The notes below the pieces were generated by a model. The model was not told the DNA's origin. It did no database searches and worked only from the letters and a program-made list of their open reading frames with translations. The translations under genes and the position numbers were made by a program. DNA of 64,000 nt from Diplonema japonicum (lineage: Eukaryota; Protista; Euglenozoa: Diplonemea), in NCBI GenBank assembly GCA_964019335.1, contig OZ025749.1, positions 253,042 through 317,041 on the forward strand, in the 5' to 3' direction. Positions 5,416 through 64,000 of the stretch are shown piece after piece (the first letter of the stretch is position 1; the number at the start of each line of letters is the position of its first letter).

Positions 5416-6073
5416 TGTTCTACTAAGTGTTGTGCTGTGCTTCGACGGTAGCTGTGCCCGGTGAATTTTGCACAATCTTGTAAGTTGAGCTGCGTCGCTT
5501 GGTGTCTGGGCAAGCTGTACAAGGTGTTGATGCCAATGATCTGCCTTCTCCGTGTTGTTTCAAGTCCCGTGAGCCAGAGGGGTCCATTTTTGTATGCAAC
5601 CTTGTGCTCTTTTAGGCTTGCGATGTATGTTGTCATTGCTGCTGCGAGGTACCCTTCTAAAAAACAGTGGCCTTTTTTCGCCGTCCGGGTTTTGACATGG
5701 GAAAAAACAATTTTGTATGCAAGCTCATCATCAACCGTGGTTTCCGTGACGTCGCTAAATTTCAGTTTGTGCGACTCTTTTGTCCTCATCCCGCTTGCAA
5801 ACATGCAAGCTGCATATGCCTGACGCACTATGTTGTAGGGATCGCTGAATTTCATTGCCAGATACTCTTTCATTTGTTCCTGACTAAACACCGAAGCTTT
5901 TTTCACCTCATGGCCTTCTTCAAAGCGCTTCAAAAGAAGTGTAACCCTGGGAAAGCTCTGCATTTTTTTACCGAAGTTTCGTGTGAAAATAAAGCTGGGA
6001 GTGACATAAAGTAAAATCTTATTTTCACTCCCACCCTTGAAAACCCGGCTCGAGTTATATAAAAAAAAAGCAC
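5416..6073 (-). mobile_element. Truncated tyrosine recombinase (Crypton-like)
   Basis: SGMRTKE (Arg), VKTR (Lys) and FTGHSYRRSTA (HxxR); broken by host sequence before the catalytic Tyr. Confidence 0.8.
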
Positions 6074-7500
6074 ATGGAAGCGTGCAAGGAGGCTCACAAG
6101 CAGTTCCGCCCCTTTGCGGTGGAAACGTTTGGGGGGCTGGCAGGGCAGGCCAGGGAGTTCTTGAAGGAGGTGGCATCTGAAGCAGCGAAGAGGACGCGAC
6201 GACACAGGGTGGAGGTCTTCAACGACATGAAGGCTGCAGTGTCGGCGGCCGTGGTCGAGGGTGTGGCGAGGGCGGCCATTAGGAAGGGGAAGGTCCTGGT
6301 GGAGAAGATGGAACTGGACTCGGAAGCGGAGCAGCACTCCCAGGAGGAGAGGAGGGAGCGGGAGGATCAGGAGGCGATGGAACGGGAAGCTGCGGCTACA
6401 GGAACGGAGGAGGAGGTAGCTGAGGCGGCGTTCTACCTGACAGGGATGGCTGCTCTGGCCGCGGCGAAGGCGGCGGAGAACAAGTTCCAGGAGGAGGCAG
6501 AGAGGAGGACCGCGAACCTGGCGGCCGCGGCGGTGGTAGCAGCAGCGTCAGCGGCAGCAAAAGCAGCGGCGGAGCGGGTGGACGCGGAGATGGGAGAGGA
6601 GGAGACAGGGAGCGGCACAATCCAAAACACAGAAGCTGGCCCTGTGAGGAGCGGAGGAAGGAGGGCCGGAACCAGGGGGCGGTGGATGGCACAGAAAACA
6701 ATCAAACAGCTACCAACGCACCGAGGGGAAGGACCAGCAGGAGGCAGAGACTACGACAGGCACAATCCAAACACACAGCCGACGGGGTCGAAGCCGAGGG
6801 CATGGAGGACGCACAGGGAAGCCAAGCCATTCTTCCGGAGATGGAGTTGCGTGACCCGAAGGGCCGTACATCATCGCGCCACGCACCACGGGATGTGGTC
6901 GCGGAAGGGGAGACCAGTTCGACGCACAGGAGTGGCTCCAGAGGGTGAAACAAGTGATGGAGGAGTGCAGCGGGGAGGAGGGTGAAGAGTACTCCCAGCT
7001 GCTGCGCGACGAGTGCACCACGTCGAACGGGGGAGAGGGGAGGCTGTACGACCTTGTGGCGAGGATAGACAAGCACAGGAGGTCCGGCCCGGAGCAGGAG
7101 GGTGACTTACTTCCCCACGGGGGCGGAAGAGGGGGTGAGCTACACCCTCAGTACCCAGCCCGACGTGGATCCCGAGGTGTTCAGGTGGAGGATAGTCGCG
7201 AGCAACATGGCGAACGGCACCGAAGGGAACCTGCACCTGGTGAAAGTGCAAGAGGAGGGTGGGGAAGTGGTCCCCGTGGCGGAGTACCAGAGGGTCTTGG
7301 AGGCGCGGAAAAGACACAGGGATTTCGCGGCGGGGATGAGGCGGGTGAAACAGGAGGAAGGGGCAAACAAGAGGCAGAGGGAGGGGAGCGAGGGGACGAT
7401 GGTGGGAATCCCGGACGGACAAGGGAAGTCGGTGGAGGTCCAAAAGTCCAGGAAACAGCTCGCCCCTGCGCGAGGGGTGGAGGCGCAGGAGGAGATGGAC
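6074..7500 (+). mobile_element. Fragment of a CRE/SLACS-type non-LTR retrotransposon: C-terminal part of the restriction-like endonuclease plus a degenerate extension
   Basis: FRPFAVETFGGLAGQAREFLKEVA matches the RLE tail motif; purine-rich composition with abrupt edges at ~6074 and ~7500. Confidence 0.7.
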
Positions 7501-59623: not shown

Positions 59624-60466
59624 ATGGGTCTTGCTGCACGCACAAGCGGTGGGTGTGTGAAGGCAGGATTTCAGGGACGTGTGGGTGTTCTTGTTGTAGA
59701 CAACTTCAAGAAGAGGAATGCGCTGTGCGGCCGTGCGATGGTTACGCTGCGAGAGGGTTTCAACGCGCTGAAGGAAGAAGGCGTTGCTGCCGTGCTGGTG
59801 TGCGGCTCGAAGGGGAGGTTTTGCTCCGGGGCGGAGATGCCCACGTTGGTGCATGGGGGGTTCCAGGACTACATGCACACGACTCTTGAGGGAATGCGGG
59901 CCGGCGGCCCCCTCACCTATGCCTTGCTTGAGGGGCATGCCATTGGTGGGGGTGCGGAGCTAGCTATGTCCGCTGATCAGAGGATTTGGACGGAGACCTC
60001 GTCACTGCAGTTTGTGCAGACGAAGATGGGGATCACCACAGGATGGGGCGGCACTAAGTTCCTTGCTGAAGCCGTTGGCCGCTCCACTGCATTAAGGCTT
60101 CTGTGCACGTCGCACAACGTCTCTTCTTACGCCGAGGCACAGGCTCTGAGAATTGCTGACCACCACCTTACACTACCACCGCAACAGGGGCGCATTGACG
60201 TCAACCTCGAGGGTGTGGGTCCCTGCCCTTTGACCGCCCTTGACGCCGAAGCAGTTCTCACGCCCCTTGCCAGGCATGCCTTGAGCTTCATCGATGGCTT
60301 GCACAAGCATAACTACGTCGATGCGAATTCCTCGACGAAAGAGATCCTCGCCTCCCAACCCCAGGACAGGCTTCTCACCGAACAGCGAGAGTTCTCCCTG
60401 CTGTGGCGGAACAAGGACCACAATGCAGCTTTGGAGGCGGTGTGGAACGTTCCTAGCACTGCGTGA
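59624..60466 (+). CDS. Crotonase/enoyl-CoA hydratase family, ECHDC1-like
   Basis: KRNAL, FCSGA, AIGGGAELA, FVQTKMGITTGWGG. Confidence 0.85.
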   Translation: MGLAARTSGGCVKAGFQGRVGVLVVDNFKKRNALCGRAMVTLREGFNALKEEGVAAVLVCGSKGRFCSGAEMPTLVHGGFQDYMHTTLEGMRAGGPLTYALLEGHAIGGGAELAMSADQRIWTETSSLQFVQTKMGITTGWGGTKFLAEAVGRSTALRLLCTSHNVSSYAEAQALRIADHHLTLPPQQGRIDVNLEGVGPCPLTALDAEAVLTPLARHALSFIDGLHKHNYVDANSSTKEILASQPQDRLLTEQREFSLLWRNKDHNAALEAVWNVPSTA

Positions 60467-60729
60467 TGATTTTTTTCTTAGATTCTTTTTTTGGGGGGAG
60501 GATCCGTTTTACTTTTTTTTAAAGGTTTTTAAATTGAGTTGGGTGCCGAAAACGATTTCTTTTTTAAAATGACAATTAAAGGGGGAGGAAAACTAACAAA
60601 GGGTGTGTGGAGAGACATGAAACAACAAAAAAGGAAAGGGAAGAACAGAAAGATGAAGAGAAAAAGAGAGAAGATGCTTCACTACAGCAGCAGCCGATCT
60701 GTTGAGCCCAGGAGGGGTTTCCTGTTTGT

Positions 60730-61091
60730 TTGTTTGATGCTTAGAAGGACTCGAACAACAGAGTGCGCGCGAGGACTGCTGTGAGGAAGATGACCGTGAG
60801 CGAGATCTGTAGGGACAAGCGCGAAGAAGCAGGGCGGTGGGAAGGGAGCCCCCGGGCGGAGGGGCCGAGCCTACGCACTTTGGAGTGGGATCCAGACGCC
60901 GGAGGGAGATCAGTTGATAGGGGCCGAAGGGGAACAGCAGGTGGAGGTTGAGGCGGGAGGGAGACTTCATCCAGGCACATTCTCATTTTCCTCCCACCCC
61001 ATCATAGTTTACTAGTTTCACGAGTGGCGCTCCTTTTGTTGTTGTTAGACTTTAGGGGAGCTACTCAGGAGGGGGAAAAAGAAGGAACGCC
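60730..61091 (+). mobile_element. Probable retroelement 3' end abutting the first SL
   Basis: Purine-rich ORF tail ending at 60951, then stem-loop GAGTGGC...GCTACTC directly before the SL. Confidence 0.35.
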
Positions 61092-61129
61092 ACCAACGAT
61101 TCTAAAGCTACAGTTTCTGTACTTTATTG
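61092..61129 (+). other. Genomic copy of the spliced-leader exon (38 nt)
   Basis: ACCAACGATTCTAAAGCTACAGTTTCTGTACTTTATTG; the 3' half is the conserved euglenozoan SL, the 5' half is diplonemid-type (recalled, not searched). Confidence 0.92.
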
Positions 61130-61298
61130 GTCGTTCGTGTTCTGCTGGTGCCTGCCGCCTCTGCCTGGGTTTGCCGCTGCGTCCGTCATCCGTCGTCGCC
61201 GTCGTCCGGGGGGGTTGTTTTGCCCGTCGGCCTGCCCGCCGCTCAACGAAAGGATCCCCTCTCCCCCATCACACACTATAAAACAAAAAAAAAAAAAA

Positions 61299-62369
61299 AT
61301 GGATCCAAGACGACTCGCAGGAGGAGGTGACCGCAGCCGCAGTCCGCAGGAGCAAGCCCGCAGCCCGCAGTGCACGGCGCCGAGACCCACCCAACCAGGC
61401 AATCTGGTTGGGCAGTATGAATCCCCACCCCCTAGATCCCCCCACCCCCCTTTAGAAAAAAAAAATAATAAAAAAAAAAAAATCACAAGTAGAGACCGCG
61501 GTTTTGACCGCCACAACCAAGGGAGCAGCAGCCCCTGCTACAGCCACGGCCGCCCCGGCCGCAAGCACGACTGCTGCAGCAGCCCCAGCCGCACTGAACG
61601 CCGCAGCCGCCCCTGCCGCCTTGAACGCTGCAGCCGCCCCTGCCGCAACTGAGACCGCCGCAGCCGCCCCTGCCGCCTTGAACGCTGCAGCCGCTCCTGC
61701 CGCAACTGAGACCGCCGCAGCCGCCCCTGCCGCAAGCCCGACCTCCGCAGCCGACCCTGCCATAGTTGAAGAGGAAAAAAAAAAGAAGAAAAAGGGGGAA
61801 GGGTGGATACTGAAAGATGGTGAGCACCCCCCCGGGTTGAAGACAGGTGCTGCCCCCGCCTTCCCAGAAGCTCTGCTGTCCGGGAAGTGGGAGGCCGCAG
61901 GGCTCAAGGTGGTCCCCAACCAGGTACTTGTGAATAAGTACAGACCTGGTTGTGGATTGCCGCCCACAAGGACGACGCAAGACTGGGACCGGTCGTCCTA
62001 GTCTTGTCGTACGGGGCTGAGACCACAATGGTCATGAGGAAGGGGGACAGGGTAGCGAGGTACCTGGTGCCCCCCTTCTCATGGGCACTGTTGGAAGGCG
62101 AAGCGAGACACCAGTGGACACACCACATCCCGTCAGGGGTGTCCACTGGTGTCAGGGTGTCGATCACCCTGCGTGCGGTTGGCCCCAGGAAGACCCACCC
62201 CCTGGGCTAACAAACGAACCCCCCCCTTTTTTTTTAGAACCCTCCACGGAAGTAAAAAACAGACCCTCTTCGGAGGAAAATGGAGAGAGAGGGGAAGAGG
62301 CAGCGCTCCCAAAAGAGGGTAGTGTTCCTCCCCCCCATTTGTCCCCCCCTTTTTCATTTTTAGAGCCCT
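61299..62369 (+). pseudogene. Disrupted AlkB-domain ORF (unit 1)
   Basis: Colinear with 62643-63617 but with frameshifts and a 129-nt deletion; truncated by the next SL block. Confidence 0.85.
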
Positions 62370-62472
62370 CCAACGATTCTAAACCACGATTCTAAAGCTA
62401 CACCAACGATTCTAAACCACGATTCTAAAGCTACACCAACGATTCTAAAGCTACAGTTTCTGTACTTTATTG
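62370..62472 (+). repeat. Four 5' SL fragments followed by a 38-nt SL (62435-62472)
   Basis: [(A)CCAACGATTCTAA ACCACGATTCTAAAGCTAC]x2 plus SL. Confidence 0.92.
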
Positions 62473-62642
62473 GTCGTTCGTGTTCTGCTGGTGCCTGCCG
62501 CCTCTGCCTGGGTTTGCCGCTGCGTCCGTCGTCCGTCGTCGCCGTCGTCCGGGGGGGTTGTTTTGCCCGTCGGCCTGCCCGCCGCTCAACGAAAGGATCC
62601 CCTCCCCCCCAACACACACTATAAAACAAAAAAAAAAAAAAA

Positions 62643-64000
62643 ATGGATCCAAGACGACTCGCAGGAGGAGGTGACCGCAGCCGCAGCCGCAGCCCGCAGG
62701 AGCAAGCCCGCAGCCCGCAGCACACGGCGCCGAGACCCACCCAACCAGGCAATCTGGTTGGGCAGTATGAATCCCCACCCCCTAGATCCCCCCACCCCCC
62801 TTTAGAAAAAAAAAATAATAAAATAAAAAAATCACTAGCAGAGACCGCGGTTTTGACCGCCGCTGCTACAGCCACGGCCGCCCCAGCCGCCCTGAACGCC
62901 GCAGCCGACCCTGCCGCCCTGATCGCAACTGAGACCGCCGCAGCCGCCCCTGCCGCAGCCACGACCGCCGCGACCACGACCCCTGCAGCCAACCCTGCTA
63001 TTGTTGAAGAGGGAGGAAAAGAGGGAGAAAAAAAGGGGTGGGTACTGGTGTATGGTGAACACCCTCCCGGGTTGAGGACGGGCCCGGCCCCTGCCTTCCC
63101 GAAAGCCCTGCTTTCAGGAAAGTGGGAGGCCCTGTCTGGGAACTCAGGGAGGGAGACCCTCCAATACGGGTACCGGTGGGAGGGGGCGAACGCCAAGGTG
63201 CGCCCCACCACGGGGATCCCAGGGGGGGCGGAGGGGTGGGTGAGGAAGGTGGCCGCCGCCGCAGGGCTCGAGGTGGTCCCCAACCAGGTACTTGTCAACA
63301 AGTACAAGTCTGGTTGTGGGATTGCCGCCCACAAGGACGACGCGAGGCTAGGACCGATTGTCCTAGTCCTCTCGTACGGAGCCGGGACCACAATGGTCAT
63401 GAGGAGGGGGGACAGGGTGGCGAAATACCTGGTGCCCCCCTTCTCATGGGCATTGTTGGAAGGTGAAGCGAGACACCAGTGGACGCACCACATCCCGTCC
63501 GGGATGTCCACTGGTGTCAGGGTGTCGATCACCCTGCGTGCGGTAGGCCCCAAGCTCACCCGCACACCCCAGGAAGACCCATCCCCTGGGTTAACAGACG
63601 AACCCCCTTTTTTAGATCCGCAAACCCCGCAAACCCCGCAAACCCCGCAAACCCCGCAAACCCCGCAAACCCGCAAACCCGCAAACCCGCAAACCCGCAA
63701 ACCCGCAAACCCGCAAACCCGCAAACCCGCAAACCCGCAAACCCGCAAACCCGCAAACCCGCAAACCCGCAAACCCGCAAACCCGCAAACCCGCAAACCC
63801 GCAAACCCGCAAACCCGCAAACCCGCAAACCCGCAAACCCGCAAACCCGCAAACCCGCAAACCCGCAAACCCGCAAACCCGCAAACCCGCAAACCCGCAA
63901 ACCCGCAAACCCGCAAACCCGCAAACCCGCAAACCCGCAAACCCGCAAACCCGCAAACCCGCAAACCCGCAAACCCGCAAACCCGCAAACCCGCAAACCC
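62643..64000 (+). CDS. Open-ended ORF (at least 452 codons): Ala/Thr-rich linker, AlkB-family 2OG-Fe(II) dioxygenase domain, repeat-encoded tail
   Basis: A-tract-ATG MDPRR...; RETLQYGY, PNQVLVNKY, GIAAHKD, LSYG, GEARHQWTHHI, RVSITLR; no stop before the window end. Confidence 0.85.
   Translation, partial: MDPRRLAGGGDRSRSRSPQEQARSPQHTAPRPTQPGNLVGQYESPPPRSPHPPLEKKNNKIKKSLAETAVLTAAATATAAPAALNAAADPAALIATETAAAAPAAATTAATTTPAANPAIVEEGGKEGEKKGWVLVYGEHPPGLRTGPAPAFPKALLSGKWEALSGNSGRETLQYGYRWEGANAKVRPTTGIPGGAEGWVRKVAAAAGLEVVPNQVLVNKYKSGCGIAAHKDDARLGPIVLVLSYGAGTTMVMRRGDRVAKYLVPPFSWALLEGEARHQWTHHIPSGMSTGVRVSITLRAVGPKLTRTPQEDPSPGLTDEPPFLDPQTPQTPQTPQTPQTPQTRKPANPQTRKPANPQTRKPANPQTRKPANPQTRKPANPQTRKPANPQTRKPANPQTRKPANPQTRKPANPQTRKPANPQTRKPANPQTRKPANPQTRKPANPQTRKPAN
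63618..64000. repeat. Tandem array (AAACCCCGC)5 then (AAACCCGC) x~42, runs off the window
   Basis: Directly visible; 9-mers 63622-63666, 8-mers from 63667. Confidence 0.97.

Follow-up and report, generated by a model that had tools for sequence, protein, structure and literature searches.

The distal part of a 64,000-nucleotide (nt) stretch of the Diplonema japonicum genome (contig OZ025749.1, referred to here as C102, positions 253,042–317,041 of the forward strand; "the window") carries two units that open with a DNA copy of the spliced leader (SL) and encode an AlkB-type dioxygenase. Our analysis indicates that the region 61092–63619 very probably consists of two dead, 3′-truncated heads of a telomere-associated diplonemid retrotransposon lacking long terminal repeats (non-LTR), inserted by priming on telomere repeats at a chromosome end that was built stepwise.

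Two leader-headed units at a chromosome end

Direct reading of 60600–64000 and alignment of the two stretches resolve two units arranged head to tail, both opening with ACCAACGATTCTAAAGCTACAGTTTCTGTACTTTATTG. The 19-nt core of the leader occurs twice in the 64-kb window, against 0.01 occurrences expected by chance. The reading, the alignment and this count confirm the description in an earlier note on this DNA, which had reported two head-to-tail SL-headed units, each with a 5′ untranslated region (UTR) of about 170 nt. All features described below lie on the + strand.

Unit 1 (61092–62369) is a damaged element head that, by alignment, ends at about element position 1537. It comprises SL nt 2–39 (61092–61129, read directly), a 5′ UTR (61130–61298, read directly and aligned) and the first open reading frame (ORF1), with its start ATG at 61299. 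Compared with unit 2 and other copies, its AlkB region is frameshifted and has lost sequence in three places, through a 129-nt gap private to unit 1 and deletions of 1 nt and 19 nt. Unit 1 belongs to a different subfamily from unit 2; the 129 nt missing from it are present in its best non-self copies, which show 96% identity.

The 65 nt between the units (62370–62434), at the 5′ junction of unit 2, form a stutter of partial leader pieces, in which SL nt 3–16 followed by SL nt 3–22 minus one A appear twice. The program TRF describes this segment as 2.4 copies of a 33-nt period at 100% identity.

Unit 2 begins with SL nt 2–39 (62435–62472), identified by direct reading and the core count, followed by a 170-nt 5′ UTR (62473–62642) that is 99% identical to copies on C107, C68, C35 and C42. 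The AlkB part of the element coding region starts with the ATG at 62643 and extends to 63617; these 325 codons contain no stop, and the frame runs on into telomere repeat. The unit had been thought to extend past 64000. Instead, it is cut at 63617–63619, the bases CC at 63618–63619 being compatible with both the unit and the repeat. Chromosome-end repeat, six copies of CCGCAAACC and then (CCGCAAAC)n, caps the truncated unit from 63618 to 64000. The long simple repeat spans 63662–64000, and base 64000 is the last base of the contig. In 28 of 30 retrieved copies, ...TTTTTTAGAT is followed by CCCCTTTTTTGTGGGC..., at the point where the window switches to the repeat. Unit 2 thus keeps only the first 1.19 kb of the element (cut at element position 1192).

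The innermost element-derived piece at this end is a degenerate old remnant of the C-terminal region of the element's ORF2, in sense orientation at 60736–60959. It was detected by tblastn with residues 1825–1919 of the ORF2 of a copy on C75, and by blastn (80% over 60869–60959). A host gene lies at 59624–60466. Short Logan contigs of this multicopy family match 60700–63655; none of those listed spans the junctions between flank and unit 1, unit 1 and unit 2, or unit 2 and telomere, and they neither confirm nor contradict the assembly of the end. No run listed for them is recorded as RNA. By itself, the content of the window is ordinary: two dead fragments and one healed end.

The full-length element

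The wider family gives these fragments their identity. The earlier note had proposed that the units are the 5′ part of an SL-capturing retroelement with its own demethylase, and had suggested a genome search with the unit for a linked reverse transcriptase (RT) and restriction-like endonuclease (RLE). The search located an RT downstream of the same head in full-length copies on C24 and C75, and an RLE in the C75 copy; these copies support the proposal. Intact-length elements measure 9.6–10.6 kb and comprise SL nt 2–39, the 170-nt 5′ UTR, a giant coding region, and a ~0.8-kb 3′ UTR that ends in 26-nt repeats and a poly(A) tail. From its N-terminus, the coding region contains a low-complexity segment, the AlkB domain, proline/serine repeats, a C2H2 finger, an OTU domain, a second C2H2 finger, the RT, a CCHC knuckle with an R2-type RLE, and a long acidic tail.

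On C24, successive leaders are 10,659 bp apart. One period (L031, minus strand) reads SL, 5′ UTR and MDPRR..., and the C-terminus of its AlkB domain lies in frame with an ORF of 2738 amino acids (aa) carrying OTU (1.4e-10) and RVT_1 (1e-18). The full-length copy on C75, which belongs to the subfamily of unit 2, was assembled from two pieces (L032 and L014). Here the SL and AlkB ORF are followed by a 2352-aa ORF in which two C2H2 fingers flank OTU (3.3e-12) and precede an RT (1.6e-16). Downstream of the RT are the CCHC knuckle plus RHD...RPAD...MDV...K, and then a 0.84-kb 3′ UTR and A50. Both copies have the RT motif YLDDG; the RT domain lies outside the window. The OTU domain (PF02338), likewise present in full-length copies only and not in the window, displays the motifs DGNCMFHAL and NHYE in C75, by which it is a predicted OTU cysteine protease/deubiquitinase.

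In an alignment of 41 endonuclease sequences, residues C24, C29, H40, C44, H52, E73 and D103 are invariant and R84, P85 and K133 nearly so; the motifs CCHC, RH, E, RPAD, D and K are therefore invariant or nearly invariant among these homologues. The only strong Foldseek matches of the endonuclease model (predicted local distance difference test score, pLDDT, 89) are R2Tg, R2Pm and R2Bm, at an E value of 1e-5 and a probability of 1.00. A sequence-only search of the PDB with a piece of the endonuclease region excluding the CCHC part gave no match; with the RT as query, the PDB returned R2 at 1e-7. Relatives of the RT–RLE segment, at 30–35% identity, number in the hundreds across eukaryotes; the best named one is a D. 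papillatum protein that NCBI calls "SLACS 132 kDa protein". Poly(A) 3′ ends, 5′-truncated copies and variable flanks, the marks of target-primed reverse transcription, are all present. Together with the LINE-type (long interspersed nuclear element) RT and the predicted CCHC plus PD-(D/E)xK RLE, they identify the element as an RLE-bearing non-LTR retrotransposon of the R2/CRE supergroup.

Two further observations concern related sequences. On C99 (341945–360427), near the contig end, the 3′ part of the element is repeated four times with a 6021-bp period. In this tandem array the unit is shortened, and its 3′ end adjoins unrelated sequence instead of poly(A). In the window itself, 6056–6304 (+) shows similarity over 83 aa (30% identity, E 1e-5) to the endonuclease part of ORF2 of the element. 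A CRE-type endonuclease fragment had been noted at 6074; the RLE-like match is real, albeit weak at this identity and length, and probably represents what is left of a different RLE-type LINE.

The AlkB domain

The AlkB domain with intact motifs that had been reported in unit 2 is borne out. The unit 2 ORF matches the Pfam family 2OG-FeII_Oxy_2 (PF13532) at 1.4e-13, with the domain at ~63138–63539, and holds the residues HKD, WTHH and RVSITLR. A PDB sequence search retrieved human ALKBH8 (6.6e-9), with HKD aligned to HID and WTHH to WTHG. An AlphaFold model (pLDDT 91) has structural matches to ALKBH6, ALKBH8, NMAD-1 and ALKBH2/3/5, at E values down to 6e-12. The predicted fold, the HxD...H triad and RxSxTxR place the domain in the AlkB family of Fe(II)/2-oxoglutarate dioxygenases. 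When ORF1 was compared in 26 copies, 18 were found to hold this part open. Unit 2 has YGAGTT, as against YGAETT in the other 16 intact copies, one of which has YRAETT.

The closest relatives of the domain are short, cellular-type proteins with 36–40% identity. In D. papillatum, proteins of 1964–2635 aa contain AlkB, OTU and RVT_1 in the same order. Their AlkB domain is 36% identical to that of unit 2 and keeps HxD, H and RxSxTxR, so the domain has been retained with its catalytic residues over a long divergence. Its substrate is probably the element's own nucleic acid, and the most likely candidate role is base demethylation of the template RNA. The DNA copies, which stop at SL nt 2, are compatible with the idea that AlkB helps the RT past methylated cap-proximal bases. 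Two metagenome proteins (P0229 and P0239) carry AlkB relatives fused to an mRNA cap guanine-N7 methyltransferase, or to FtsJ 2′-O-methyltransferase and N6-methylase domains; these fusions point tentatively to a connection of this AlkB subgroup with cap chemistry.

One old copy on C76 (1320–1660, minus strand, L040) has an unrelated insert of ~330 nt within the A-rich linker of the AlkB ORF. The insert sequence recurs, inverted, after an element end without poly(A) in L055. The old C76 copies also show many C>T and G>A changes.

Distribution across chromosome ends

A search of the 62.5-Mb genome with unit 2 yielded at least 56 scored matches. Copies on the minus strand lie within ~17 kb of contig starts and copies on the plus strand near contig ends; the three positional exceptions are associated with arrays or with interstitial telomere repeats. 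The family occupies more than 50 contig ends, always with the leader on the centromere side and the poly(A) on the telomere side. Targeting of SL RNA genes, which had been suggested as an alternative, does not agree with this distribution: the copies are at chromosome ends, the element interrupts none of the SL RNA genes found (L034, L037), and SL-derived target duplications were not seen among the copies.

Exact 32-mers of the 8-mer repeat (CCGCAAAC)n number 5617 and occur at contig starts and ends in a single polarity; four consecutive TTAGGG units are absent from the assembly. The terminal repeat (CCCGCAAA)n has its C-rich strand running 5′ to 3′ toward the chromosome end, the reverse of the customary arrangement, in which the 3′ strand is G-rich. 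An ORF resembling TERT at C41:533–536 kb contains Telomerase_RBD followed by RVT_1, both with borderline scores. We set aside the idea that the element, instead of telomerase, makes the telomere repeats, since this ORF, borderline as it is, is present. Interstitial telomere repeats adjoin element copies at C30:~334.6–335.1 kb (L023) and C64:~169.5 kb (L015). Those on C30 have facing polarities, (CCGCAAAC)n and then (GTTTGCGG)n, which could reflect an end-to-end fusion or an assembly misjoin.

Junctions of the copies

The 5′ flanks of 30 copies vary, consisting of unique DNA, of sense, 3′-truncated element (ORF2 or 3′ UTR), or of one to five telomere units. The commonest 5′ telomere junction, ...CCCGCA/ACCAACG (the slash marks the junction here and below), is found four to five times in 10 telomere-flanked copies. 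The base upstream of SL nt 2 is not A in 22 copies and is A in nine, which is close to the chance level; five copies start at nt 3. Since the copies begin at leader nt 2, the template was a leader-bearing, trans-spliced RNA, and the cDNA ends one base before the cap.

At their 3′ ends, copies have the 26-nt repeats and CTCAAGTCCCCCTTTTT, and then A14–A61. Beyond the poly(A) lie telomere repeats (An/CCCGCAAAC), two to four repeats and the next leader, or 5′-truncated sense fragments. In the C75 copy, telomere repeats separate a short A run from the A50 tail, an arrangement that looks like a 3′ transduction from a donor embedded in telomere repeats. The invariant orientation and the fixed-register junctions argue for target-primed insertion into telomere repeats. 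With its telomeric or subtelomeric position, single orientation and fixed junction register, the element is a predicted telomere-repeat-specific LINE.

Genuine leaders, DNA copies and relicts

A genuine SL RNA gene reads ...GGAGGTT/AACCAACG...ATTG/GTACCCAATCTG..., with an intron after the leader. The units instead read ATTG/GTCGTTCGTG and have unrelated DNA upstream, which sets them apart from SL RNA genes. The leader of the D. japonicum genome differs at two of 39 positions from the D. papillatum leader in PMC3795323; this near match, and best protein relatives that also come from D. papillatum, mark the host as a diplonemid.

Eight sites have a relict leader of 16 or 22 nt (TTTCTGTACTTTATTG or CTACAG...) immediately behind a full leader: C8:849420, C12:811877, C20:399043, C58:506924, C60:376461, C76:2342, C83:358325 and C102:195398. 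These sites suggest that DNA-encoded leaders have been transcribed, re-trans-spliced at an internal AG and copied again; only the site on C76 belongs to the AlkB element family. Leader-headed retro-copies are not limited to the AlkB element, given that other families also begin at SL nt 2 (L035, L036, L022, L030), with junctions SL/GTATCGACCGTGCC, SL/GTGTCCGACCGTGC and SL/GTAGAGCGG. At C2:150.5 kb (L033), a retro-copy of the SL RNA itself, containing the leader from nt 2 and most of the intron, stands behind an A34 run and has neither the upstream region nor the terminator of the gene.

Proposed assembly of the chromosome end

We propose the following mechanism for insertion. The element would be transcribed, probably by read-through from a host polycistron running toward the telomere on the same strand; the host ORFs at 46–60.5 kb of the window are all on the + strand, which makes such read-through plausible. 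Its RNA would then be trans-spliced and polyadenylated. The endonuclease would nick the G-rich strand of the (CCCGCAAA)n duplex beside the T run, and the resulting 3′-OH would prime reverse transcription at the poly(A), the cDNA reaching leader nt 2 and being joined to the centromere-side DNA. Nicking and priming in this manner would account for the invariant orientation, with the leader proximal and the poly(A) distal. At the C102 end, the history would run from the oldest, innermost piece, the ORF2 remnant, to unit 1 and then unit 2, whose distal part would have been lost by breakage or erosion before the end was sealed with telomere repeats. The closest copies of unit 1 and unit 2 are 96% and 99% identical, respectively; inner pieces therefore appear older, which favors stepwise addition.

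Several observations weigh against this scheme or limit it. Many junctions have no telomere repeat between a 3′-truncated proximal element and the next leader, and some heads are very short, namely SL plus 6 nt (L010), SL plus 16 nt (L004), and SL pieces of 14 and 19 nt. Simple insertion into telomere repeats does not explain either feature; both call for a further process, namely target deletion, end erosion or template jumping by the RT. Together with the 65-nt stutter in the window, the very short heads elsewhere suggest that template jumping also contributes. Relict leaders, which would be expected from re-trans-splicing, are present at only eight of 217 SL sites. Most copies carry a single clean leader although the acceptor AG is gone, a regain of an exact leader for which the scheme does not account. 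Alternative SL junctions exist at position 161, which follows AG, and at 129 and 138, which do not; we rejected them as proof of alternative trans-splice sites in view of the latter two, which are more likely deletions or template switches. Moreover, we deduce the nick site and strand from junction sequences, and infer the transcription, read-through and current activity of the element. Finally, dN/dS (the ratio of nonsynonymous to synonymous divergence) between two subfamilies is 1.33 in the N-terminus and 0.55 in AlkB, the latter value coming from only ~6 differences. The dS of 0.016 in AlkB is six-fold lower than the 0.105 in the N-terminus, where the subfamilies differ, which points to recombination between them and not to a clean signal of selection.

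The foremost alternative is that the chain of unit 1, SL stutter and unit 2 arose in one retrotransposition event, with the RT jumping onto 3′-shortened but 5′-intact RNAs such as decay intermediates and SL fragments. Template jumping is reportedly an established property of R2-type RTs, from the biochemistry of the Eickbush laboratory. Tiny 5′-complete pieces recur at junctions, whereas erosion of a 10-kb element would rarely stop so near its head, and every piece is sense-oriented, most of them reaching SL nt 2–3. On the other hand, unit 1 is of another subfamily, and the identities of its relatives and those of unit 2 fit a proximal older and a distal younger piece. At several junctions, moreover, one to five telomere units remain between the pieces, so healed ends must have existed between events. 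We therefore regard a single event as a possible but distinctly less probable origin than stepwise assembly.

It is hardly credible that a host AlkB gene gave rise to the units as ordinary processed pseudogenes or as a subtelomeric family, through RT acting in trans or through recombination, with AlkB being no part of the retroelement. Both units in the window do lack an RT, sequence exchange is easy among subtelomeres, and the near identity of AlkB between subfamilies with differing N-termini hints at recombination. The same head, however, continues unbroken into OTU, RT and RLE in other copies, the flanks are different at each copy, and the AlkB–OTU–RT fusion is retained in D. papillatum. 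The earlier note had allowed for ordinary processed pseudogenes of a single-copy AlkB parental gene with an AG acceptor at the position of the SL; among the scored matches there is no such gene, nor any copy with non-SL upstream DNA and an AG acceptor, and the RT is linked. The remaining alternative, that the AlkB head is a separate non-autonomous, RT-less cassette resembling a short interspersed nuclear element (SINE) and mobilized in trans by the large element, could account for the RT-less heads stacked at several ends (the window, C76 and C108), but is extremely unlikely, as the heads end at different element positions (1537 in unit 1, 1192 in unit 2, and 345, 393 and 674 elsewhere), no head has its own 3′ end or poly(A), and 28 of the 30 retrieved copies read on into full-length sequence beyond the unit 2 cut point.

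Within the preferred history of stepwise, telomere-primed insertion, there is a broader reading that we consider improbable as a whole. According to this reading, AlkB would be kept to strip base methylation from the hypermodified cap-proximal SL nucleotides, or from element RNA in general. The RT could then copy the leader almost to the cap, so that a DNA leader heads every new copy, and the next transcript might pass as a trans-spliced mRNA or use the leader as an internal start signal. Element and telomerase would jointly build and heal diplonemid chromosome ends.

Comparison with known systems

The insertion site of the trypanosomatid elements SLACS, CZAR and CRE lies within SL RNA genes, between SL nt 11 and 12. 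The element resembles SLACS, CZAR, CRE1/2 and R2 in having C2H2 fingers, RT, CCHC knuckle and PD-(D/E)xK endonuclease in the same order. The best structural matches of its RLE model and the PDB match of its RT are R2 proteins. With SLACS, CZAR and CRE it shares a connection with the spliced leader, and its D. papillatum relatives bear the NCBI name of a SLACS protein. In contrast to SLACS, CZAR and CRE, it is telomeric, opens with a complete leader copied from trans-spliced mRNA, adds AlkB and OTU, and is two to three times longer. The split leader exon in an SL RNA gene that characterizes CRE-clade insertions was not found among its copies, which lie at contig ends and have SL nt 2–39 in one piece. 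For the RT, the only pointer to the CRE clade is the NCBI name of these relatives from D. papillatum.

Closer parallels in behavior are provided by MoTeR of Magnaporthe (RLE), SART1/TRAS1 of Bombyx (apurinic/apyrimidinic endonuclease, APE) and GilT of Giardia. These elements also lie in fixed orientation in telomere repeat arrays, their poly(A) or 3′ end abuts telomere repeats in constant register, they form head-to-tail stacks with truncated copies at the ends, and they coexist with a telomerase gene, for which the TERT-like ORF is the counterpart here. The diplonemid element differs in its host lineage, its target (CCCGCAAA)n, its SL head, and its AlkB and OTU domains. It works like telomere-specific LINEs such as MoTeR and SART1/TRAS1, while structurally it is of the R2/CRE-type RLE group. 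The HeT-A/TART/TAHRE elements of Drosophila likewise form chromosome ends from head-to-tail retrotransposon stacks, whose inner, older copies are truncated. Here, however, the orientation is opposite (the poly(A) of the element is distal), an endonuclease is present, and short terminal repeats and a TERT-like gene persist.

Retro-copying of trans-spliced mRNA has a parallel in dinoflagellates, where, according to Slamovits and Keeling in 2008, mRNA recycling is said to leave relict spliced leaders. In both cases, genomic leaders derive from retro-copied trans-spliced mRNA, and a leader is followed by a truncated leader through use of an AG in the relict, as at the eight sites described above. 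In D. japonicum, by contrast, an autonomous retrotransposon acts as the main carrier, and the leader is single and clean in most copies.

AlkB domains have been reported in other selfish replicons. AlkB of the m6A-demethylase type is reported in orchid Ty3/Gypsy elements (PMC9289625). For Betaflexiviridae and their relatives, replicases with AlkB plus OTU in one polyprotein are reported, the two being adjacent in several carlavirus-type replicases. The likeness is that of a selfish, RNA-copying replicon with its own AlkB. There is no close sequence relation between the AlkB domains, and the element is a LINE, not an RNA virus or LTR element. Separate mentions of SLACS-like RTs and of a dozen AlkB homologues are found in the D. 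papillatum genome paper. Our literature search found no description of AlkB or OTU in a non-LTR element, nor of a leader-headed telomeric LINE in diplonemids.

Significance for diplonemid genomes

The combination of AlkB, OTU, RT and R2-type nuclease is a domain set unreported for non-LTR elements in the literature that we found. The family adds a telomere-targeting LINE from a little-studied, ecologically large group of protists. It marks an unusual chromosome-end repeat and shows the rebuilding of ends after loss. Its leader-headed copies, ending at SL nt 2, constitute a natural record of the reach of an RT into the hypermodified cap region, and this record makes the function of an element-borne AlkB directly testable.

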